In this document: positions 18,938 to 56,100 of the stretch, one piece after another
Layout: each line of letters opens with the position of its first letter
Numbering within the stretch: position 1 is the stretch's first letter
NCBI GenBank assembly: GCA_002189035.1
Contig: CM007992.1
Span: 1,302,001 to 1,366,000 of the forward strand
Origin: Utricularia gibba
Lineage: Eukaryota > Plantae > Magnoliophyta
DNA length: 64,000 bases
Direction: 5' to 3'
Translations under genes and position numbers: made by a program
The notes under the pieces: model-generated
The model's input: only the letters and a program-made list of their open reading frames with translations
Told to the model about the DNA's origin: nothing
The model's database searches: none

Positions 18938-20490
<1,553 letters not shown>

Positions 20491-23388: not shown

Positions 23389-24925
23389 ATGGTTTCCGAA
23401 GATTCCACGAATTCCAACTCAAATATGCTGCACCACTTCTTCATCACCAACTCCATCCAAACCCAGAACCACTTTGGAGGAGATCATCACCATTTCAATG
23501 CGTATGGAGCTTCTGCGAACTCCAATGCCGCTGCAGGCCACTACGCGCATCCTTTGCATTCATCCATTCTTGCCGACAGGATTGCGAGATCCGTCGACCT
23601 CGGACACGCTCCCCAAATGTCTGAAGAATCGAATATGACTTCTGTTCACGATACCCGGTTAATGGATCTTCTTGGAACTTCCACCGAAGCAACTGGCCCT
23701 GCGAGGATGCTTTCCCTGTCCTTGGGCTCTGTTTCGTGCAGGCAGAGACCGGCTATGAATCAAGCGTTTGTTGATCATGGGTGCTTTGACTCCTTTTACG
23801 CTCCAGCGTCGAATCAATGCTGCTCCACTTCGTCCTATGGAACTGAATCGTTTACGGCCGCCATTGGGAACTCCAAGTACTTGAAGCCTGCCCAGGCGCT
23901 GCTTGAGGAAATGGTTAGTGTTGCGGGGAAGGAGATTGATGAGGGGAACCAGAAGTTCGTGGAGGAGCTCTCGAACAATGCCGTGAAGGGGATTTATACT
24001 CTGTCTTCGGAGCTTCGGGCGGAGCTCTCCCATGGCGAATTGGTCGACGAGCAGGGAACTTATCTCAATCTTCTTAAGCTACTTTCCCTTCTGGAGGAGG
24101 TAAGTACAGGAAATGCAATCATCCATTCCCAATAGTGTTCTGCTTCTGCTTCTTCTTCTTGGTTTGAGTAGAAGGATGGAATTTGCAGGTGGAACGACGA
24201 TACGATGAGTACCACCGGAAATTGGACGGCGTCGTTTCTTCGTTCGAGATAATCGCCGGTCTGGGCGCCGGGAAATCGTACACTGCTCTAGCCCTACAAG
24301 CCATGTCGAAGCACTTTGCTGCGCTAAAAAAAGCGATTGTGTCTCAGATTCGAGCTGCGAAGCACAAGATTGAGAAGGAAATGCCTAAAATCAGCTCACG
24401 GCTGTCGCAACTTTCCTTGTTCGACCAGGAAACCAGACACAATCACAATCACAACCGCGTGTCTCTCCAACAACTTGGGCTTCTCCAGAACTCCCGTCAG
24501 GCTTTCCGGCCAATCAGAGGCCTCCCCGAGAACTCCGTCGCCATTCTTCGTGCCTGGCTCTTCGAACACTTTCTTCATCCGTACGCGTTTCCTTGGAAAA
24601 TGCCCCTTGTTTGATTGTTACCTTCATTATTTGTGCTTGATCTGAAGCCATGTTTGTTTTCCCAGTTATCCCAACGACTCGGAGAAGCTGATGCTGGCGT
24701 CGCAGACCGGATTATCCAAGAACCAGGTGGGCATCTTCTTCTTCCATGGATAGATCACAGGCACATTCATTCACTCACACGCTTGGTGACTTAAACCGCG
24801 TGGGCCTGCGTCTGTTGCAGGTTTCGAACTGGTTCATAAATGCTAGAGTGAGGCTGTGGAAGCCGATGATCGAGGAGATGTACAAGGATGAGTTCGGAGA
24901 GTTCTCAACAGAGTCTGATCAGTAA
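23389..24925 (+). CDS. BLH11: BEL1-like TALE homeodomain protein, BLH11-like; exons 23389-24099, 24189-24580, 24666-24726, 24821-24925
   Basis: SKY box ([19 protein letters not shown]), BELL domain ([12 protein letters not shown]...[13 protein letters not shown]), and homeodomain [61 protein letters not shown]. The 61-nt third exon is typical of BEL1 genes. An MVSED.. start and short C-tail fit BLH11. Confidence 0.88.
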
Positions 24926-28525: not shown

Positions 28526-28993
28526 TAGAGCTGGGTACGCGTCCGGGTCAACCCGTCCGACCCGCGGGTTGACTCGTAACGAGTCAATCCGTGAATCGTA
28601 CCCGTCACTAGACGGGTACGGTGCGAGTCGAGATAGACGGGTATGGGTTAACGGGCCGTACCAGTGTACCCACTTACTTCTCCTTGATTGTCCATCGTGT
28701 GACATCCATTGTTGGGTGGAAATCATTGCATTGTACTGGTGGTAACCCAAGAGGAGAAGGCTGGGTCCCTCTATGCCACCAACATAAATATTATCCAGTA
28801 AGCAACCTAGGGGGCTGTTGGGCTCATGTGGGAGTTAAGTGAAGTATCGACGAGCCCAAGGACACTTCAACCCGGGTACGAGTCGAGTCAAGCACTTTAC
28901 CCGCACGAGTTTAACCCGCCGAGTCAGCCACTTAATTTTTGATCCGGTGGGTCGGACTCGTACGAGTACGAGTCGGACCCGTACCCAGCTCTA
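28526..28993. mobile_element. Non-autonomous hAT-type element (MITE), 468 bp
   Basis: TIR TAGAGCTGGGTACG(C/G)GTCCG matches at 19/20 positions. A perfect 8-bp TSD TGCACAAG sits at 28518-28525 and 28994-29001. ACCCG/CGGGT subterminal repeats are dense. Confidence 0.93.
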
Positions 28994-29337
28994 TGCACAA
29001 GACCGGGTTGCTAAAGTCCGGGGATTCATAAAACTTTAATGTACTTATATTCAAAATATTTTTTTATAAAAATTATACAATAAGTAACTTAATATACAAA
29101 AATAAATTTTATATAATGTTTAATCAATGTTTCTAAAGAAAATATGTATTTGGTTTGAATGATGAGGTAAACACATTTGACCTCCTAAACCCTAGTTAAA
29201 CATGTATAGGCGCGTTTGGTTGCTCGGTTTAGGTGGGTTGCGGCATGGGTTTAGACATAAATCCACGTTTGGTACGTGAGTTTCAGGTGGGTAAAAATAA
29301 ACCCACATGTTGACCATAAATCGGACGGGAACCCGTG

Positions 29338-29395
29338 GAGCTGGGTTTAGCTAAACCCAAGGGGGGGGGGGGGTTGGTTTAGCTGAACCCAGCTC
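29338..29395. repeat. Subterminal inverted repeat (20-bp arms, one mismatch) with a G13 run in the loop
   Basis: GAGCTGGGTTTAGCTAAACC (29338-29357) pairs with GGTTTAGCTGAACCCAGCTC (29376-29395). Confidence 0.85.
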
Positions 29396-29712
29396 GGCAC
29401 TTCCACTTTTGCCCTTGTGTGAACTTCATTTGAACGCAGATCTACAACCCAGATTTGTTTGTGGTTTGCCGGTGGCGTCGCCTGTTCTTTGAGCGCAAGA
29501 GGGTGAGTCTTTCGGTAAGTATGCTTTTCTATTCTTGGTGGGTTGGCCCACGGTAGCACCGTGAGAGGCCAACCACGGCAGCACCGCATAGTGGATTTTT
29601 ATCTGTGATTTTCCAATTTCAGAATATGTGGTGTTGTGTCAATGAACTTATTTTGGTCGATTTTGGTGATTGTTGAGGGGTCATAGATTTTTTCACAGAG
29701 GGTCATGTCATC

Positions 29713-31028
29713 TTGAGTGCGGCAGCAGCAGTTTTGACTGAATACTTGGTGCAGATGAATGTGTTAGTATACTTACATTGGAAGAAATATCGTAAGGGAT
29801 ATAGGGTGCGACACCAGTATTCACTTACATACACGATTCCTAGAGAAGTTGAGTTTATTAGTAGGTTGGTGAGTGATGTGAATAGCGCATCCATTGATAA
29901 TTTGAGAATCAGCCGAGATGCGTTGGGTATTTTATATAGCCTATTAGAAAATCATTCTAACTTAAAAGGCTGGAAAATATGTAACAGTTCCGGAGATGGT
30001 TTGCATTTTTTTAGAAATATTAGGTCATCATAAAAAATTGCGGGTGCAGAAGCATGTCTACGGGAGAAGCACCGAGACTGTGCTTAGGTGCTTGCAAAAG
30101 GTGTTGCATGCGGTGCTTTGCCTCCATGAGGTTTTGTTAGAGATCCCAGTAGTTGCTGCAAAACGTGCATCCGAAGGGAAGTTTAAACACTTCCAGGTAG
30201 ACACATCTTTCATGCTTCTTTTTACGAATGTGTATCCTAAAATTGATTATGTATTTGCAGGGTTGTGTTGGAGACATAGATGGTACATACATCGGTATAC
30301 GAGTTAACAAAGGTGATGCTGCAAGGTACAAAAATCGAAAAGGGGTGATATCCACCAACGTGTTGGGTGTATGTGATGAACACATGAAATTTATATATGT
30401 GCTTGCTGGGTGGGAGGGGTCTGCTGCAGATAGTCGGGTGCTAAACGATACACTCTCACGATCCGACGGCTTCCGTGTACGCCCAAGTATTTCACTTGTT
30501 TAGCCCTTGCGCATGTGATTCCAATGATTTTATGCACCATGTATACGTGATGACACATGAACATAATACCTATATGACAATGGATACGCCAATAGGGAGG
30601 GCTTTTTGGCACCATACCGTGGGGTTCGTTACCACTTGAAGGAGTGGGGACAGGGAAATGGAGCACCCCAGAATGCGAAGGAGCTATTCAACATGTGGCA
30701 TGCATCAACCAGAAATGTGATCGAACGAGCTTGGGGCTTGATGAAGATGCGGTGGGGTATACTACGGATGGCTAGCTACTATTCCGTAGACACACAGAAC
30801 CGCATTGTATTAGCATGTGCTTTACTGCATAACCTCATTCGAAAGGAGATGGTGGTCGATCCCCTGGAGGATCAGGTCCCATTGGACTTCTAGGATGAAG
30901 CTGAGGATACGAGTGATCTAGAAGACGTCACAACATCTGCAGAAGGCAATCAGACATGGAATAGGTGGCATGACCAGCAAGCCGAGGGGATGTACACCGA
31001 GTGGCTGGCATCCCGCAGACGCCGCTAG
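29713..31028 (+). pseudogene. PIF/Harbinger (HARBI1-like) DDE transposase, inactivated
   Basis: Motifs GCVGDIDGTYI, FIYVLAGWEGSAADSRVL, YLYDNGYANREGFLAPYRGVRYHLKEW, FNMWHASTRNVIERAWGLMKMRW and ACALLHNLIR. Lesions: frameshift near 29970, degraded second intron acceptor near 30560, and premature TAG at 30891. Confidence 0.93.
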
Positions 31029-32034
31029 TGTAGCACTGTATTAGTAATTGTCGTGTTAGTGAATTTCCTAAATTCCCATTCGGAACCTATCATGTCGTGT
31101 GTACTGTATTGCTAAGCACAACTATGTGCATTGCAAAGTCATGTCCTAAATTCCCGTTTGTACTCCAACCTTGAACTTGAAATTGTCGAGTATTTGATAG
31201 TTGCTGCACAAATTGTTGGGATTGTACCATAGTGTCATGTCTTACCATGGGTAACATGGTCAGACATGGTGGATCATTGGAGCCAACACCGCGATCTTGA
31301 GTTGAGGTGCTACAGAAGCTTGTAGGACACCAAAGTTGTTGGTAGCACCACGTGTTTCATCGTATCCGGTGCTGAAAAAAATTAGATATTAGATGAGTGG
31401 GAAGCTGGTGCATAGTAGGAGGGTAGTTGGCAGAACATGAATGCGCCTTTTCATCAAACACCATGATCCGTAAACTCCGATGCATCGGAACGCCTGGGCT
31501 ATGCCCCGTTTAGTGCTGCACCGCATGCTTCCTCGTATCCGATGCTGTCAAGATTTAGAAGTACATGCGTATGCAGTTGGTGCATATTAACGTGGGTGAT
31601 TGGAAGTACAATAATACTCGTTTTGATCAAACACCGCGAAAACATAATCCGGTGTTTATAAACACATGAGCTACACTACGCATTCTGCACCACCGCGAAA
31701 TGCGTATCCGGTGTTCTAAGTTCCATAAATAAATCGGCAAAAAATATTGCAGTTATCCAGCATTAAATGAGAAGGGTGGTTGACAACCGTACAACGCTAT
31801 TAATACCCCCTGTGCACAATAAAGGCGTCTGACAATGTGCACTTTCCAAAAAAACTTCATTAATTTCGCCCATCCAACTCCACCCTTTCGGAAAACGTGC
31901 AGCAGCACCGCAAAAACCGACTCCTTGACAAATTCTCAAGAACAGCGTCGCGACGGTGAGAACCTTTGCCGTCAGCACCACGTGTTTCAAATTCTTCGTT
32001 GCCATCGTCGGCTAGCACGCCTATTGTTTTCTAG

Positions 32035-33848
32035 ATGTTGGCGTGTGAGAAACTACATATCCGCTTCTCAATTCCCGACGGTTACACGATGTGGGATAAA
32101 CAAACGGGCGAAACGTCGGACGGCGAACCACCATCTAGAGTTGGAGCATCGGGATTTGCCATCAGCACCGAGCACTTTCAGTGTGGATTGTGACTCCCCC
32201 CACCCCCTTTCTTGGTGCAGATACTTGCTGCACTCCAGATCCCATTCTCCCACCTCACACCACGTTCTGCGGCGCAGGTTCTCGCATTTCTGCAGATCTG
32301 TGAAGAAGAGGACATACCCCCGGAAATGCGTGTCTTCTTTGCGGTTTCTGTTTATGTCCAACGTAAGGGGAGTCCGCACTACTCGCTTCATGGAAAACCT
32401 GGTGTGGTTCTGGTGACAGACGTGAGATTGGTGGACCAGTTTTGTATGGGTATGCCCACCCACCGCTGCAAAATGGCCAACAACGTTGACAGTGTCAGAG
32501 AATGTGGGACACCCATTAGGTAACCATACAAAATAATTTCAGTGTTGCACACGTCTTGTGCAACAGTACTCATGTTTGTTGTTGTTTTCGTTGTAAACAT
32601 AGAGGTGTTGCCAAAACGTGCGGCAAGGAGGTTTGTGAATTTGTTCTCTTGCAGAACAAAGTCCTTGGAGGACGTCTTGCCCCCCTTCGTCAATGCCCCT
32701 AGGACACACCATCTGTGGTGCGGAACCCCTCGACACCGTCGACAACGTACGAATACAAATGATGATCCTGAGGAGGTGACCCATGAAGAGGAAGAAGATG
32801 TGCAGCCAGAAATCAGGGGCAACAAAGACGAGCCAACACCAATCTGGACACACGACGACGGGTGCGATGCTGCCACTGCAAAATATATCGAAGTGGAGAG
32901 ACTGTACGCAGAGAATCTTGATCTCTGTGGTCGGCTTGCATGGTATGAAGCAAGGTGGCCATATGGTGGATTGTCTAGTGATAACACGGCCCCACCACGG
33001 AAGTTGCTAATATTTGACGTGAATGGCGTAATTGCGGATATTGTGTATTCTCGCGAAGTCAGATGGGGGGGCGCCGAAGCCGGATGCCGTCATTTACGGG
33101 CAAAACGGTAATGCGGTGTCATCGATATGCATTTAATATTTGGTGCGTCTGTCACCACTATTTCTTGTGCTTGTAGTGTATCTTCGACCAGGTGCACGTG
33201 AGTTGATACAGTTTTGCATGAAACACTTTGACGTTCCCATCTGATCTTCAAGAGGATGGTAAGACTGATCATCTTGCAGCCAAGGGGGTCCGCGTTCTTG
33301 CTGACATCTGATTTTTCTGACCACATGTGGCAGGGAACAATTGCACGATGTGGTTCAGTGATTACTAGGGCCTGCAGCAACCAGCAAGCTCGTCTTTCAA
33401 TGGGATGGATCAAGGTGTGTGGACACAGGCTATCCGGTGCACGACAACAGGAACAACATGGTTAAGCTTAAGCTTTTGAATCATGTATGGGGCGTCAACA
33501 CCAAGTTCAAGAGCAAATATCACCTTCTTAATACGCTTCTCATCGATGATGTGCCGTACAAGTCACTACACAATTCGGTGAGTTTCCGGTAGCGCTCATT
33601 CTCCACCGTCTTGCCTCTGATTATTGTTTACTTTCATTGAACAGCTCGAAAATGCCATATTCCCAACCACATTCAAGTACACCGCGGTGAATGATTGTTC
33701 GCTGGTTCGAGGGGGAGATATTAGGTCATTCCTGGAAGCCCTCATTGACAACATGGATGTACCCATGCACGTCGATCGCCGTCGGGTAGGTTAACGTCCA
33801 ATAGACGAGGAACACCCATTGTGGAAGCATTACAAGACTCTTGTCTAA
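32035..33848 (+). pseudogene. Third gene inside the Harbinger: Transposase_28-like N-terminus, acidic linker, and FCP1/NIF HAD-phosphatase-like C-terminus; exons 32035-32519, 32603-33107, 33177-33258, 33334-33577, 33645-33848
   Basis: N-part: GL*LPPPPFLVQILAALQIPFSHLTPRSAAQVLAFLQICEE...DWWTSFVWV. C-part: RKLLIFDVNGVIADIV..PDAVIYGQNVYLRPG..FCMKHFDVPI*SSR..KLVFQWDGSRCVDTG..NTLLIDDVPYKSLHN..NAIFP..SLVRGGDIRSFLEAL..G*RPIDEEHPLWKHY. All four introns are GT-AG and phase-consistent after two frameshift corrections (about 32425 and about 33068). Confidence 0.8.
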
Positions 33849-34263
33849 TTGACGGCGTACCTTTGCAATTGCATGGATCTTGCGTGAACTATCGTATGCT
33901 GACCTTGTTAGTTTTTAATCAATCACTGATCGCGGTGGCACCGCATGTTGTAACATCCGGTGTCATCACTGGATTTGGAACCTTGTGTCTAGACGTGGTG
34001 CTTCGTAATATGTAACACCAACGTGGTGCTAGTCCATAACTACTCGATAGCACCGCTCTGAATGTGATGGTAGTTGCAGTACCGTGTTTGTGGAAGAGTG
34101 CTCAACAACGAAACGCCGTGATTGTTCTTACGCGGTGCTTCCACGTACGAAGTCAGAACACTATCTACCCTTTGTAGTTCTCATATCAGTTTAAAGGATG
34201 ATTAGAATATGAAATACATCTAGTCCATGAGTCCAACATAAGGTGGAGCAGCACACAACAGAT

Positions 34264-35313
34264 TTAAGATCTACGTTCGGATACTAAACCACACACAATA
34301 AGCTCTCTCTCACAGTCGCTAGAGGCAAGGAAATAGCGCAACCTCGTAGGGTTGGAACTAATCGTCTCTACTATGGTAAAACATTCGATGGCAGTTAATT
34401 GCACCGGCATACCTCTAATGATCTCCCCTGCCTGACGTTGATTATCCACCAACTCCCGTGCTTGCTGCACCACTGTTAATCCCAAGTGACGTAGCTCTTC
34501 GCATGTGCGCACGTTAAGCTCCTTCATTTTTGTGATAAACTACACAGCATCATCGATTCCCCTCGGTCCCTTGCCGCTTCGTCTAGAGCACCGCGATGAG
34601 TCGGTGCTGTTGTGTGATTCGGAGTCCCTACTAAGCGTGATGTTGACATCCTCCGCGACATAACCAATTGGGTCACAAGGTGTGTCAGCATACGAGAAGT
34701 TCATATCGTGTCCAGTGCTATCCGGGTCCAAAGGGCAATCCGAAGACACTTCCAGATTCTCCCCCACATCTTCCATCAATTTCCTCTTCTTGGTCGCAGC
34801 TACATAGCTCATCGTTTTTTCTCCTGTAGTCTGATCCTTTCCAAAGATTTCCTGCCACTCCATTTAATACGGCCACGCCTTGTGTCTTAGGGCGCGCAAT
34901 CTGGGTGCATGCTGACATAATAACACGATCAGCACCGGATATAACACAGCGACAACAGGGCATACATACCTGATCAATCTCCTTCCAAACCTCATCGTCT
35001 ATGTCTACGGTGTAGGTCAGCTCACTGAAACCGGTGCATGACCGTGATAGAAAATCTATAAGGAGGTAGTAGTATTTTTTCTAGGTGTGCACCTTGCTAG
35101 ATATTTGGGGGTGTGCACGGATGTCGGTTCCAAGTTGGAGTTTCAAAAACTCTGTCTCTAACGCTCAGTGATACCCACCCCTAAAACCATTCTCAATTTT
35201 CCAGCCTTCTTTCACTATCTGCTTCAAAGCATGCAATAAGTCTTTCTCCTCATCTGAATTCTAGGCACGTTTCGTTTTTTGTGAGACTCTTCCACCACAT
35301 TTGGGCTATGCAT
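34264..35313 (-). pseudogene. PIF/Harbinger Myb/SANT-like DNA-binding protein (ORF1), inactivated
   Basis: KRA*NSDEEKDLLHALKQIVKEGWKIENGFRGGY...HPQISSKVHT*KKYY...VDIDDEVWKEI|...AWPY*MEWQEIFGKDQTTG...YFLASS. In-frame stops at about 35262, 35166, 35082, 34865 and 34541. Confidence 0.88.
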
Positions 35314-36048
35314 ACCTGCAATCTGTGCTGGAGGAAATAAAACAGCAAGAACAAAGCACCTAAACCGAATAATTACCACAAGTAAACCGTAAAATTCACT
35401 CAAAATTCAACGGATTTCAAACAAGAAACCTTACGCAACGAAGGGAGTATACAAACTGGACTGAACCCATGGCTCTTCACTCTCAATTACTTGTGAAAAC
35501 GAGGGATCTCGTCGACAGGTAGCACCGCGACAACGGACTGTGAAAGTCGGTGGACGAAGGGGGTAATGGTAATAAAGAGGAATATGTCTGAATGGGTAAA
35601 GTGGGTGTGAAAGTAGGTGCACGAGTGTGAAAGGCTATATTGGTAAATTTCCATAAAAATTATGTATAAACCCAATTTTATACCTACCTATCAAACATAA
35701 GTTTATTTAAACCCAAATAATGTAAACCCATCAACCAAACATGATTCACAGAGATTAAACCCACAAAGTTGGATTCCCTAAACCCAAATAAACTAAACTT
35801 GGATTTAGGTCAAATCCAGCAACCAAACGCGCCCTATATGTGTGTCAATATCTTATTATTTCTAATTTAACATTTTCACCTAATTAATTGGAAAAGAAAA
35901 AGAGTTTATTAAAGGGAATAATATAATTCACTTTTAATAATGATAGATTAAATTTTGAACTCAATAATAAGGTTTCACCTAATGCTTAATAATTTAAACC
36001 CTCCTAAATATGAAGCCTCTAACCAAACAAGCTCTAGGTGAACAACCT

Positions 36049-37042: not shown

Positions 37043-38640
37043 TCAGAGTAGTTTCCATGCCTGACCTCCGTCTGCATTGAATTGCTTCAACCTTCCGAAA
37101 AGCATCACTATCAGGAGGACTGTTTTCCCCTTGCTGCTCCATGCCCCGGCGAATCCGTACCACCGGTTCACACACTTGTCATCCTCTGCCAGTCGTCGCT
37201 CGCAGCCGTAGCCGGTGGTGAATCCCACGTTCCCGTACGCACTGTCCGCTCCCCAGATCGCCATCGTTTGCATCAGTAAGCACAACACACGCAGAGCAGA
37301 AAAGTTACCTTACTACTTCCAGTGTGATGTTCAGGACGCTGAAGTTGAGCGGATCGGTCTCCATGCTCCTCCTCTCCGTGACGCAGATGATGATGACGAA
37401 GATGGCGATGTACGATAGCTGCGAAAACACCAGGCTCTCCGCAATCCCATTTCTCTGTTTCCCCCATCTCGCACCCCTTTCCGCCTCGCCTTCGCCGTTA
37501 CCGGCCGGAAGAAACGAAGTATACGGAGGAAGATACCTGCGGCACGCACAGCCGGGTCAGTGAGGATTTCTTGGACAGAGTCAGTTGGGAGACTCACATC
37601 ATCACGATGAAGAATGCCAACACGGCTGGTGTGATTTTGGATAAATCGACGACAGTTTCGCCGCTGCGTCGGGCGTTAACGATCTCGAATAGAATGCAGA
37701 CAGCTTTCCGGCAGAGACCCAAGCCTTCTAATTCCATGGAGTTCCACTCTAAAGCTGAGAATAGCAGGAATCCGATGAGGATGAAACCGAAAACAGTGGC
37801 TGCTAAACACTGAGAATGGCGAGATGGAAGCAGATGAAGGTACTCGATTTTGCTCGTGTTCTTGAGCAGATACTCGGCTTCTTCTTTCTTATTCTTCTTG
37901 CTGTGAGACCGCAGTAAGATTCTGAGACAGAAAGGGAACAGTGTGTTCCCTAAGAGAACTTGGGGGATCAAAACCAGCAAAAGCACTGAGTTTTCACGAA
38001 AACATATCATATTCTCGTTCGTGGGCACGAACCCACAATTACTGAACGTCGAAATGACCAGGAAAACAGCAACGATCCAGGTTTTGAGGCCTTTGGATCT
38101 GAGTAAAGCAGCAGCTGAATGATTGAGAGTCAGGTAGAAGAAAACGAGAGCTACACCGACCAAATGAACTACCAGAATGTATCTCCAGACTACAGAAATC
38201 AAGTGATCTTGAGCGTCAGCCTCAAGTAAGGGATTTTGCAAACCAGATCCAAATTCAGAGTCGTCGGAATCGAATTCGAAATAATCCTCTTCTTCTGCTT
38301 GTTCAACTTCACTCCAGAGCTTCCTCGACGAAAGCCCAATCACAGAAACGAAAATTTCACCCCCACATAACATCAAGAGGGATATAACCATGAGCTGTCG
38401 GTCTGAAAACGCCTCCATCTCAACAGTGGACATGCTGGACGCGGTGGCGGCAGAGACCGCGGTGAACAACATGTCAATCTTCAGTGGACTGAAATCTGCT
38501 TTGGGTCTCAATAATTGAAGAACCAGAAAACCCAGAAGGGACAGGGCAACTAGATACCCTGCTTGCACGAAACCAGCGTTTATTTCACGATTGCAGCGAG
38601 AAGGGGGCTCTTCCCGGGGACTCCGAGGACCGTTGTTCAT
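37043..38640 (-). CDS. HKT1: HKT1-type (class I, Ser in first pore loop) Na+ transporter; exons 38640-37598, 37536-37309, 37241-37043
   Basis: Pore motifs SAATASSMST (Ser), STFSNCGF, NARRSGE and SAYGNVGFTTGY; MYLPPYTSF; C-terminal MLFGRLKQFN..GGQAWKLL. Confidence 0.93.
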
Positions 38641-51639: not shown

Positions 51640-53172
51640 TCACGCCGCTATTTTGACGGGGTATCTGTCGATGCAGTCCTCCCAGGGGCCGTTTCTGGAG
51701 GGACTCACGCGGCGGAGCGCCACCCACACGGCGCTGTTGCACTTGAACCCGCTCCCGAACGCGATCTGCCATACCTTGTGACCCTTCCGGACGCGCCCCT
51801 TGGCTTCTATGTACGCCAGTTCGTACCAGATGGAGCTGGAGGAGGTGTTCCCGAACCGGTGAAGGGTCATCCGGGAAGCTTCCACGTGGATGGGGAGGAG
51901 GTCCAGGTTCATCTCCAATTCGTCGATCACTGCGCGCCCTCCGGCGTGGATGCAGAAGTGATGGAATGCTAGTTTGAAGTCTGGGATGTACGGTTTCAGA
52001 TTCCTGTTCACTAATTTCTTCAGCACCAGTGCCGCGAAGAAGAGGAGCTGTTCGCTGATGGGGAGAACCAGGGGACCCAATGTGGTGATGTTTGTTTTCA
52101 ACGCGCCGCCGGCGATCGCCATCAGGTCTTTCGAGAGCGAGACTCCGGTTTTCCCGGCGTCGTCTTGCTCCTGGTACACGCAACGGAAGGCTTTATCCTC
52201 CGCGCCTTTGTGGGTCCTCACCACGTGAACCAGCTTGTACTTGGATCTGCGGCGGTCGCTAGGTTTATTGGAGAGGAGCACCGCGGCGCCGCCGACGCGG
52301 AAGAGGCAGTTGGGTATAAGCATAGATTTCTTGTTACCGAAGTACCAGTTCTGGGTGATGTTCTCTGTGCTGACGACCACGGCGTATGTGTTTCTGTTGG
52401 ATTGGAGCAGATCCTTGGCTAAATCCACGGCGATTACGCCGGCGCTGCAGCCCATCCCTCCGAGATTGAAGCTCTTGATGTTTCCCCTCAACTTGTACTT
52501 GTTCACAATCATCGCAGACAAAGAAGGCGTCGGATTGAACAAACTGCAGTTGACAACCAAAATCCCGATATCCTTGGGCTTCAATTTCGTGTTCTCGAAC
52601 AACCTATCCAACGCCCCGAACATCACCTGCTCCGCCTCCTCCCTCGCCGCCTGCATCGACGGCCGCGGCGGCAGAAAATGCATCGCCTCCGGCACATAGG
52701 TCTCATCTCCGAGACCAGAGCGTTCGAGAATCTTCCTCTGAAATTCCAAGGAAGAATCATCAAAATCCCCAGTCAAGGAAGAATGCTCCATAAACCGATG
52801 AAACGGAGCCTTGAGATGCTCCGGCGCCTGGTAACACGAGTAATCCAGCAAATAAACAGAACGCGGCCGCCTCATGATGTACACCGTGGATCCGAAAACG
52901 ATAAACACGGAGCAGATTATAACAGAAGCCAAATTATACTTAAGATGCAGCCACAGCTGACGAACATCATCGGGATTCATCTCCGAAACTTGGACGAATA
53001 TGGCCACCATTAGCGGGATCAAGCAGAGGGTGAGAAGATTAGAGATCAAATAATGGTAACCCAGTTTCACATACTTCAAATTAACACTCTGCAGGAAATC
53101 CGGCAGCCTCCGGGGATGGTGAATCCGGACGCCCACCCTCGCTCCTCCTCCTCCTCCGCCGCCGCCGTCCAT
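51640..53172 (-). CDS. KCS4: 3-ketoacyl-CoA synthase (KCS4-like), intronless, 510 aa
   Basis: MDGGGG...[25 protein letters not shown], catalytic [16 protein letters not shown] and [10 protein letters not shown]. The true ATG is at 53172; the ORF-track extension begins at GTG. Confidence 0.95.
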
Positions 53173-56100
53173 GGCCACCAATTGAATCGACGAAAACCAA
53201 AAGGAAGAGACACAAGGAGAAGCCAAGTTGCTTAAGGGACAGCACAAGAGCGGAGAGCGAAGGGTATTAAATACTACCACTGCACTCTGAATTCATTGCC
53301 AAATTGCTCTGTCCCCCCATCGCATCTCCTTCTCTCTCCCTCTCTGCGACTTCCTTCGTCTCCGCTAACCAAATAACGTTTACCCTGCCGTAAAAGAAGA
53401 TAAAGACACAGCGGCCATAGCTTTTAAAATTCAAGGTGTTGACCGCTCTCTGTTACACTTGCCTTTTCACTGTCTGCTAATATTTTAAAATTCTGAATTT
53501 AACTGGGATATCATATTTATTTTTATAAGAAATTAAAATTTAAAATATTAAATTTATATAATTATTTTTATTTTTTTACAATATTTTTACAATAAATTTA
53601 GAAGTGTGCAGTTTTAAAAGACTGCTGTCTGCTACCTACCCTTGCCAAATCTCAACGGGTACACTCCAACATGTACTATGCAATTATTTTGAAGCTAAAT
53701 TATGATTAAATTGTGATTGAAATAGGATTCGATCGTATTTATTTTTTTATATTTTAAAACGTTGAACGATTTACATTTCAAAACATCAGTTATGTGGATC
53801 CAACATTTTGAAAAATTCAGAAATGATAACCAAATTTTGGGTAAGTTTTTGTAATTAAAAAATAATATAATTTATTTTAAGATTTAAACATAATTAATAA
53901 ATATTAATCCCACATACTCAAAATCAAATTTTGATAGAAATTTTCAATAAAAAATTTAATGTAAATTGGGAGGAGGGGTTGGGTTAAAATTCGAACTTTC
54001 GTTTTAAAATTCAATACATTTTTTCTATAAATCTATTACTTGAATTATTGGGCTAAACTTTATTTAATCTCTACTAATACTCGTTTTAAATATTCAAAAA
54101 TTTTACAACATTTGAACCTTTTCTAAATTTAATATCTATAAATGAAAAAATATTATTTAAATTCTTAATAAAACAAACAAAAATTTTATTTTCAAGGGGA
54201 CAGCCAATAGACATGAAAATGATAAAACATACCACATTTTTTCAAATTTTGCAATTCATTTCTGTATAATGTCTGAGTGGTATAATTTTTTAAGATATGT
54301 TTTTTATGACATCTACTTCTATCATCATCTCAATATACCATCTAACCATTTTGTCCTCCGTACTCAATCATTGTGCGGAAAGCCTCGACCTCTATATTTT
54401 TTTTTCCATTAGTGGATGAGCTAAAACACATGTGATTTACTTGTTTTCCAAATGGTCACATTGATCTCTTTTTTTCTTTAGATCTTTTTTTTAATTACGA
54501 CTTTGATATATTTTTATTATTTCGCAAGAACAAACGACACTTGAAAAGTCATATGTAAAATGAAAAACTCCTAAAAATGTTGAATGGTTTTGAAAGAATT
54601 TTTCCCATAAACAAGGATATTGCATTAGTCATGATAAATGATATAGACAACGTTTAGAAATCAATTATATTCTACTAAAATTAATTATATTTTTGTATAT
54701 TTGATTTTGTATTTCAAATGTGTATTATATTTTTTTACGTGAATTAATTTTTAAAAATCATTTCAATTCTATAAAAAGTATGAATAAGTGGTTTTAATAT
54801 AAAATTATTTTTTAAAAATTGATTTTCATAATAAATTTAATATTATATATATACATACATATTTGTTAATGATAAAAATTATAATGAATGTCATTTTAAA
54901 TAAATATTGATTAATTTATTTGTCTATCAAAATTTTATTCTAATTATACGAATTGGGATTCTACAAATTTTCAATTGGTAATAGAATAATCATTGATTTT
55001 AAGGAATAGAGTAAGAATTTAATACATAGAATATAATTATTAATAAGTATAGGTAAATATGTAATTTAATTATAAAAATCACTTTGTAATTTTTACTATA
55101 ATAGTCATTTTTAGAAAACACTTTTAAATATATATCAATTTTCATTTTATTAAAATATTTAAGTTATGTTAAAATCAATTTTAAAGTGATTTTTTTCAAA
55201 CTTACGTATAATCTAGTATTATGTTTCAAATCAGTCGAAAATGACTCTACTGCTAGTATTACAAATTATACAAATAAAAGGCATATATTAATAATTTTCA
55301 AATGGAAAATCATATTTCCAATTAAAAATATTAAAAATTCGCTTTAATTTAAAGGAGCTATCATTGTTGTAATATCAGATATTATAAACAATATATGATA
55401 CAGATCCGGAATTTATAAAATATTAATGATATGGTAGTTGCATTTTAAAAAGGGTTCCAAATCTACGTTTAAAATTCATATAAACTTGGATGCTTTTTTA
55501 TTATTTTTATAATATTTTCTATGATTAGTTTGAAATTTGTCAAGAAAATGAAGAAATTAGAAAATTGCCGTCCTGCACGCAATTGTATTGGTAGGAATTT
55601 AAGGCAGGTTGGACACCCACTTTTGAACATATGCGTGTATTGTAGTAAAGGAACATGGGGTGCAGAGTGGGGCCTCTTCCACCTATTCCAGAATGAGAGA
55701 AGGTTTGAAATGTAGTTAATTTGGATGGAATATTTGAAAATATATTAAAATATTTGTTTTGGTAAATTTTAATTAGAATGAAATATATTATATTTATATA
55801 AAAGATAAAAAACAAAATGAATAAAAAAGAGACGGATGATAAAAATATCAAACGAGGGGTGAGATAATTAAATCACAACAGTACATATTAGAGTTGTAAT
55901 CGGCTCGACATTCAAGATTCTGAATGTCAGCATTTTTTCATAAGCATGATTCATGTGAGCATTTGAAAAAAAGTCAGCATTTTTTGGATTGTTTCTAGAT
56001 ATGCATAAGAGATGTTATAGATACTTGAAAAAAATTATAAATATATTGTACTTCTTAGGTACTTGCAATAACTTATGCGGATCATGAAAAAAAATTTGAT

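Follow-up and report, generated by a model that had tools for sequence, protein, structure and literature searches.

FCP1/SCP phosphatases carry a DxDx(T/V) motif and act on the C-terminal domain (CTD) of RNA polymerase II. Some plant DNA transposons carry VANC-type anti-silencing factors. Additional domains are also found in retrotransposons: Transposase_28 is an extra open reading frame (ORF) domain of Retand elements and occurs in 23% of them, and PMD is an extra-ORF domain of Ogre retrotransposons (PMC6317226). In host plants, transposons are silenced by PMD proteins that bind the phosphatase-like PP7L, and fusions of PMD to a PP7 domain have arisen twice (PMC7156037). In fungi, Harbinger-type (PHISTA) elements carry a captured TET/JBP dioxygenase gene that has been proposed to counter silencing (PMC12730594). 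Here, we analyse a stretch of 64,000 nucleotides of the Utricularia gibba genome (GenBank assembly GCA_002189035.1, contig CM007992.1, positions 1,302,001 to 1,366,000 of the forward strand; hereafter the window, in whose coordinates all positions are given). The subject is a PIF/Harbinger DNA transposon in this window and its third gene, in which a Transposase_28-like exon is followed by exons for a NIF domain of the FCP1/SCP type.

By analogy, the described system that resembles this gene is the PMD-PP7 module (MAIL3 and VvMAIL2.2; MAIN/MAIL1 with PP7L), where a retrotransposon extra-ORF domain likewise meets a phosphatase-type domain in cis or in trans and which affects both TE silencing and gene expression (PMC7156037). 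It differs in that PMD is not Transposase_28, the phosphatase domain is of PPP type and not of HAD/NIF type, and the genes belong to the host and are not transposon cargo. The PHISTA elements match the element of the window in being PIF/Harbinger-type with an extra host-derived, enzyme-like gene beside their own genes, but they are fungal and their extra gene encodes a dioxygenase instead of a Transposase_28-NIF chimera. Retand-type Ty3/gypsy extra ORFs share with the window gene a PF04195 (Transposase_28) domain above the gathering score, whereas in the window this domain forms exon 1 of a spliced DNA-transposon gene and is joined to a host-derived domain. A full-text literature search yielded no description of a plant Harbinger with NIF cargo, and none of the papers found to mention Transposase_28 describes a Transposase_28-NIF gene. 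The original prediction for this locus, made from the sequence before our analysis, had likewise named no earlier description of such a fusion, and we found no published description of it.

The stretch 29209-35833 is a decayed copy, 6.6 kb long, of a three-gene PIF/Harbinger DNA transposon. We posit, at a probability of roughly 0.65, that its chimeric Transposase_28-NIF gene obtained the NIF part from a host gene, inherited the D-x-N motif of that part together with it, and provided an accessory factor in the active ancestors of the element. The structural and evolutionary part of this reading is highly probable, while the accessory function is tentative.

The element ends in terminal inverted repeats (TIRs), and a 19-nt TIR pattern has just two sites in the 64-kb window, at the 29209 and 35833 ends, where 0.01 would be expected by chance. 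Its flanks read ATA on the left and CTA on the right, so that TA alone is common to both and a clean 3-bp target-site duplication (TWA) was not seen there. Subterminal repeats of the GGTTTAGCTAAACCCAA type, putative binding sites, lie inside the left end (Table 1) and recur near the right end at 35700-35716 and 35771-35787. The transposase remnants match Plant_tran (28.5 bits) in addition to DDE_Tnp_4. The chimeric third gene is located between these remnants and a probable Myb-like gene, with all three genes inside the same TIRs.

The third gene (32035-33848, + strand) comprises five exons and about 510 codons, and its four GT..AG introns restore one reading frame (Table 1). The first of them would link the Transposase_28 exon, with the frame kept, to the exon that holds the linker, with its acidic run at about 32770-32815, and the beginning of the NIF domain. 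Judged from splice sites and phases, the two halves would have been translated as one protein. The product of about 500 aa that had been reconstructed in the original prediction is obtained by reading through four stops and two frame changes and removing four introns.

That a Retand-derived piece and a piece of a NIF gene came to lie next to each other by chance, as unrelated pseudogene fragments, is hardly credible. The two halves have different evolutionary origins and no transcript was seen, as such an arrangement would have it; in a shallow check, PF04195 was also present in none of the best 120 of 1094 NIF-family matches, and NIF in none of the 100 Atlas clusters nearest to the Transposase_28 piece. 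The halves nevertheless share one orientation and are separated by a canonical in-frame intron, and exon 2 lacks a start codon. Their adjacency is moreover kept in other copies: a contig of one of them spans exon 1, intron 1 and exon 2, and both halves show similar depth across more than 1000 related DNA contigs. Because the Transposase_28, linker, DDE and Myb pieces of the window have no tblastn match in 120 metagenome loci, the fusion is known from this genome alone.

The Transposase_28 half is recognized by a PF04195 match at 32194-32520 (+) with 27.7 bits (E 3.2e-06), above the Pfam cut-off of 26.2. It covers positions 14-62 of the 69 in the profile, and the first 13 positions precede the stop at 32191. 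PF04195 is further carried by 76 of the 100 ESM-Atlas clusters nearest to this piece (top score 0.96).

The motifs named in the original prediction all occur in the NIF half in collinear order, as FDVNG, YLRPG, (W)SS, FQWD, LLIDD, GGDIR..LE.L and a G.RPI...W..Y tail. Relatives were gathered with a degenerate DNA pattern for NTLLxDDxPYK, which returned more than 120 metagenome contigs, and all eight relatives tested with Pfam are PF03031 (NIF) members at 54-145 bits. Against a family hidden Markov model (HMM) of 199 positions, built from the domains of 30 relatives, the spliced reading with an X at every stop or frame break scores 138.8 bits (E 1.6e-41) over positions 4-196. Exon 3, exon 5 and the motif I piece, all of which lack the search motif, each reach an E-value of about 1e-3 to 3e-4 alone, and of the 2025 ORF pieces from all six frames of the window, those that score with E<0.1 all lie inside 32524-33791. 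Since the X-joined reading scores from end to end and no other ORF piece of the window does, the NIF half is real and complete. For the exon 4 piece, NIF is also found in 88 of the 100 nearest Atlas clusters (top score 0.91). The Transposase_28-like and NIF-like halves, the acidic linker and the assignment of the tail to an uncharacterised plant FCP1-homology family were thus anticipated correctly by the original prediction, the last as judged by alignment to relatives annotated as 'FCP1 homology domain-containing protein'.

Further searches with single pieces were less productive. Nothing could be learned from an Atlas search with the piece of the C-terminal tail. For the exon 4 piece, no candidate protein sharing three 5-mers was found in a length range that left out full-length relatives, nor was a related locus found in metagenome or viral contigs. 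A phmmer search of exon 2 (32542-33108) against 1.84 billion protein representatives returned a spurious bacterial repeat protein only, which suggests that public protein sets do not contain the protein of this family.

The canonical motif I, DxDx(T/V), is replaced in the window by D-V-N-G, and the alignment places the Asn opposite UBLCP1's second Asp. The general acid/base of HAD phosphatases is the Asp two residues past the nucleophile; in SCP1 this catalytic residue is D98. We read the motif columns over 65 relatives, ranging from algal and protist ORFs to grasses and asterids; the search pattern excluded motif I, so that the result at the +2 position is not circular. This position is Asn in 64 of the 65 relatives, Ala in one and Asp in none. 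Because of this distribution, D-x-N-G is an old, conserved signature of the donor NIF subfamily that was inherited with the captured domain and is no innovation of the transposon. An origin of the Asn through private G>A decay (GAT to AAT) was considered and rejected, as the relatives have Asn and the well-supported differences between copies do not include position 33022.

The remaining catalytic residues are conserved. The nucleophile is Asp in 62 of 65 relatives, motif II has Ser/Thr in all 65 (first position Ser in 60, Thr in five) and motif III has Lys in 64 of 64; the DD of motif IV is present in 65 of 65 by construction, being part of the search pattern. The window copy keeps all of them, namely the nucleophile Asp, SS in motif II, K in motif III and DD in motif IV. 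With the Asp at +2 as the sole replacement, 'pseudophosphatase', one of the possibilities raised in the original prediction, would probably overstate the case. A family that retains these residues but has Asn at +2 would more probably bind phosphorylated partners, or turn them over very slowly, than act as an ordinary phosphatase, and it is not obviously 'dead' as an enzyme.

The single solved structure found by the family profile is that of UBLCP1 (3SHQ, E 1.1e-06). It shares with the family the LLVLD start, the NSSNT..DD region of motif IV and the fold, and differs by a ubiquitin-like domain and by D-I-D-Y-T, with a second Asp where the window family has Asn. UBLCP1 is a characterised phosphatase that acts on the proteasome (PMC5451543). 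As had been proposed with the original prediction, a structure was modelled, in this case of the domain of a host relative (metagenome ORF L024). The AlphaFold model (predicted local distance difference test, pLDDT, 94.8; predicted template-modelling score, pTM, 0.90) is of the FCP/SCP-type HAD fold, and its top 32 matches in the PDB all belong to the FCP/SCP family (SCP1/2/3, CTDNEP1, TIM50, UBLCP1 and Fcp1). By homology to this model, the same fold is predicted for the window copy. The best structural matches are SCP1/CTDSP1, SCP2, SCP3 and Fcp1, with template-modelling (TM) scores of 0.75-0.78 by target and E 4e-10; they have HAD motifs II-IV in common with the model, but their identity is 18-20% and they possess DxDx(T/V).

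One reading, built on the CTD-binding decoy that the original prediction gave as an example, is that the transposon itself turned a DxD phosphatase into a DxN form, a catalytically dead decoy that binds the CTD of RNA polymerase II. The FDVNG motif is real and the fold family does include the CTD phosphatases SCP1-3 and Fcp1. The Asn, however, was already fixed in the donor subfamily, leaving no change within the transposon, and the nucleophile is kept. The fold matches the FCP/SCP family as a whole, the nearest solved relative in sequence acts on the proteasome (PMC5451543), and we identified no signature of CTD recognition in the sequence of the window domain. We therefore regard this origin and role as very improbable, and neither the deployment of DxN by the transposon nor the specific link to the CTD is upheld.

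Some relatives collected along the way show architectures of their own. The sole relative without Asn at motif I (L018, of a short plant paralogue type, KKGGPYSASNTLLIDDKPYK) reads D-L-A-G, and two metagenome contigs (L001, L079) hold tandem arrays of three NIF-like genes of the same KKGGPYSASNTLLIDDKPYK type about 3 kb apart. A 594-aa ORF (L017:1977-3758, -) has two complete tandem DxNG NIF domains (PF03031, 145 bits in two stretches). Four metagenome contigs (L004, L052, L057 and L112; e.g., L004:5131-7308, -) carry ORFs of 713-746 aa that are probably algal. L004, the one that was scanned with Pfam, combines a DxNG-type NIF domain (54 bits) with a Methyltransf_16 lysine methyltransferase domain (87 bits), and this fusion is possibly a Rosetta-stone hint to what the DxNG family works on.

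With respect to its origin, the NIF domain of the window is closest to land-plant genes. It shows 37% identity to a Panicum-type relative and 25-33% to algal ones. In a tree of 66 sequences (LG+gamma, Shimodaira-Hasegawa-like supports), also proposed with the original prediction, it falls within the land-plant clade (0.93) and there within the 'long' paralogue group of seed plants (0.88). The host subfamily, for example, Panicum hallii PAHAL_9G083600 (P0034) and L024, is collinear with the window domain over about 195 residues and shares D-x-N-G, WSS, F.WD..C, LK.L, NTLL.DD.PYK, AIFP and the GGD.R.YL..L tail as well as two introns. It differs in having NIF as its sole Pfam domain behind long, unrelated N-termini, where the window gene has Transposase_28. 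The window gene further differs in being transposon-borne, in belonging to more than 1000 repeats, in its very long branch and in lacking one host intron. In public databases, members of the DxNG subfamily go by 'FCP1 homology domain-containing protein', 'uncharacterized protein' or an automatic 'TIM50'.

The introns speak to the mode of capture. On genomic contigs, host genes are interrupted at about positions 40, 69, 93 and 150 of the HMM. Two introns are common to host and window genes in position and phase: the one before (V)Y[KL]RP (phase 1) and the one after YK..N[PS] (phase 0). After WSSR, the introns of both agree in phase and lie two codons apart, and the window gene has no counterpart of the host intron between F.W and D. 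Because intron positions and phases are common to both, the NIF part was captured as genomic DNA, introns included, and not as cDNA, from a land-plant gene of the 'FCP1 homology domain-containing protein' kind.

Two further observations concern NIF genes in other plants. The host family is strongly expanded in Asteraceae, where some members (P0021, P0023 and P0025; Helianthus, Bidens) add PF05266 before NIF. In moss-associated metagenomes, more than 40 contigs (e.g., L003, L014, L016, L019, L043, L051, L068 and L116) contain decayed, divergent NIF-like exons of the NTLLVDDTPYKS.FN..AIFLESF type, at times several per contig. Such exons look like a further family, highly repeated and possibly transposon-borne, of another plant; these loci have no tblastn similarity to the Transposase_28 or DDE pieces of the window.

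The copy of the third gene in the window is dead. It has six lesions, four in-frame stops and two frame changes (Table 1), and at least three of the stops (33242, 33359 and 33792) are private to it. Its private differences are mostly A for G and T for C, which is the pattern of cytosine deamination. When same-species contigs of two DNA runs were aligned to the 2.3 kb around the gene at 80% likeness or more, 1060 contigs from one run and 520 from the other matched. From these counts, the third-gene family is highly repeated. Approximately one third of the aligned contigs are one letter shorter at 33065, in the run of seven G.

The main rival to our reading, and a rather unlikely one, is that the gene is a functionless passenger: the NIF segment, and perhaps also the Transposase_28 segment, would have been picked up by chance in a Pack-type transduplication and never have made a useful protein. 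Plant DNA transposons often capture genes, mostly as non-functional fragments (reviews PMC13317346, PMC8903248). A passenger would also agree with the lack of matching RNA contigs, with the frame breaks in this copy and many related contigs, and with the very long transposon branch. Pack-type elements have no transposase and carry fragments, whereas this element is of autonomous type, with transposase remnants within its TIRs, and its cargo is a complete domain that extends from motif I to the family-specific C-terminal tail. In addition, the four introns have canonical sites and correct phases, the junction to the Transposase_28 exon is in frame, and every motif residue conserved in the host family is kept in spite of the 37% identity.

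Several points weigh against our reading. No transcript of the third gene was found among the listed RNA runs and no contig of two RNA runs matched it, for which reason splicing and fusion are read from the DNA. Single uninterrupted pieces of this copy give no Pfam NIF match even at E<=10, and the profile behind the score of the joined reading was built from members chosen by the NTLLxDDxPYK of this copy, so that 11 columns match by construction and the other approximately 185 do not. In the tree, the transposon sequence stands on a very long branch (1.6 substitutions per site), and its exact sister group is unreliable (support 0.68). The frame-breaking length of the G-run is shared by about two thirds of the related contigs, and much of the amplification may therefore stem from copies that were already defective. 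Contig depth among the related copies dips at introns 1 and 3, and a reading of these dips as a sign of selection was dropped as too weak, since the non-coding DNA downstream is equally deep. Finally, we know of no characterised member of the DxNG subfamily.

Were the gene an accessory factor, splicing in active ancestors would have made a single protein of the two halves. Its NIF(DxNG) part would act as the host family does, most likely binding a phosphorylated protein or turning it over very slowly. The Transposase_28 part would direct this activity to complexes or chromatin of the element itself and so blunt host control. Precedents for such a role are the PMD-PP7 fusions together with the MAIN/MAIL1-PP7L complex in TE silencing (PMC7156037, PMC6317226), and the fungal Harbinger-type elements with a captured TET/JBP gene (PMC12730594). 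A more far-reaching idea, which we offer as speculative and consider unlikely, is that Transposase_28-NIF(DxNG) acted against silencing or protein-turnover control and would be the second independent case, after PMD-PP7, in which an accessory domain of retroelements works with a phosphatase-type module, and that the host DxNG family consists of phospho-protein binders or slow 'latch' enzymes.

Table 1. Features of the Harbinger copy and its chimeric third gene, in window coordinates
Feature	Position	Strand	Basis and remarks
Left TIR, GGCGCGTTTGGTTGCTCGGTTT	29209-29230	+	Inverted repeat I2, 22 nt, 91% complementary to 35812-35833
Left subterminal repeats, GGTTTAGCTAAACCCAA-type	29344-29392	.	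Direct-repeat family D2 and palindrome I5
DDE_Tnp_4 (PIF/Harbinger) transposase remnants, in two frames, decayed	30201-30890	+	PF13359, 32.7 bits (30228-30500) and 49.1 bits (30567-30890)
Exon 1: ATG and Transposase_28-like region, with GL*LPPPPFL and DWWTSFVWV	32035-32519	+	PF04195 match, Atlas search, translation
Stop TGA within Transposase_28 domain	32191-32193	+	Translation
Frame change in exon 1	32426-32427	+	Contigs of other copies are longer here by about a dozen letters; loose contig ends on both sides in runs X5 and X2; reading in frames 0 and 1
Intron 1, 83 nt, GT..AG, 35% GC (predicted)	32520-32602	+	Splice sites and phases; joins Transposase_28 exon in frame to linker/NIF exon
Exon 2: linker and NIF start (from about 32998)	32603-33107	+	Translation; family HMM positions 4-43
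HAD motif I, F-D-V-N-G (TTT GAC GTG AAT GGC)	33013-33027	+	Codons read; nucleophile Asp kept, Asn at Asp+2
Run of seven G, one-frame shift of the homologous reading	33059-33065	+	HMM-aligning frame differs on either side of the run
Intron 2, 69 nt, GT..AG, phase 1, directly before (V)YLRPG	33108-33176	+	Splice sites; same position and phase in host genes L046 and L102
Exon 3: YLRPGARELIQFCMKHFDVPI*SSRG (HAD motif II)	33177-33258	+	HMM positions 44-68, E 2.6e-4 alone
Stop TGA in exon 3, private	33242-33244	+	Nearly all other contigs have G at 33244, giving a Trp codon
Intron 3, 75 nt, GT..AG, phase 2	33259-33333	+	Splice sites; host intron in same phase, two codons upstream
Exon 4: FQWDGSRC, motif III Lys, NTLLIDDVPYK (motif IV)	33334-33577	+	HMM 57.7 bits, E 1.3e-16 alone
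Stop TGA in exon 4, private	33359-33361	+	Nearly all other contigs have a sense codon
Intron 4, 67 nt, GTGAGT..AG, phase 0, after YKSLHNS	33578-33644	+	Splice sites; same position and phase in host genes, after YKAL.NP
Exon 5: ENAIFP, GGDIRSFLEAL, G*RPI...W..Y tail; natural stop 33846-33848	33645-33848	+	HMM positions 151-196; alignment to Panicum-type relatives
Stop TAA in exon 5, private	33792-33794	+	Other contigs have C, giving a Gln codon
Candidate Myb-like second Harbinger gene (ORF1), remnants with stops	34267-35260	-	Translation by eye resembles Myb_DNA-bind_3; no Pfam match on pieces
Right TIR	35812-35833	-	Pairs with 29209-29230, 22 nt, 91% complementary

Other repeats lie within and beside the element. 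At 31344-31715, in the spacer that separates the transposase from the third gene, lie short dispersed repeats (families D1, D5 and D7; e.g., AGCACCACGTGTTTCATCGTATCCGGTGC at 31344, 31517 and 31974). To the left of the Harbinger copy, a 20-nt inverted repeat (28526-28545 / 28974-28993, 95% complementary, about 430 nt between the arms) may represent a small miniature inverted-repeat transposable element. The host neighbourhood is gene-rich and includes a PMI1-like C-terminal domain (63-1787, +), whose product is nearest to that of Genlisea aurea (64%) and then to other Lamiales, a cysteine-protease I29 propeptide (20023-20490, -), a BEL1-type POX domain (23389-24135, +), an HKT/TrkH transporter (37594-38640, -) and a KCS (FAE1) ORF of 546 aa that looks intact (51640-53280, -), for whose protein an exact look-up gave no match in the collection searched.

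For this locus alone the message is modest, in that the copy is dead and its DxN motif is inherited. For the families involved, the gene links Transposase_28 with a eukaryote-wide NIF subfamily in which the general-acid Asp is replaced by Asn, and thereby offers a handle for studying both. Descriptions of autonomous plant DNA transposons usually give them one or two genes. With a spliced, chimeric third gene, a high-copy Harbinger lineage would be a candidate plant case of a transposon that arms itself with host-derived machinery, beside the VANC-type factors and the elements with TET/JBP genes (PMC12730594).

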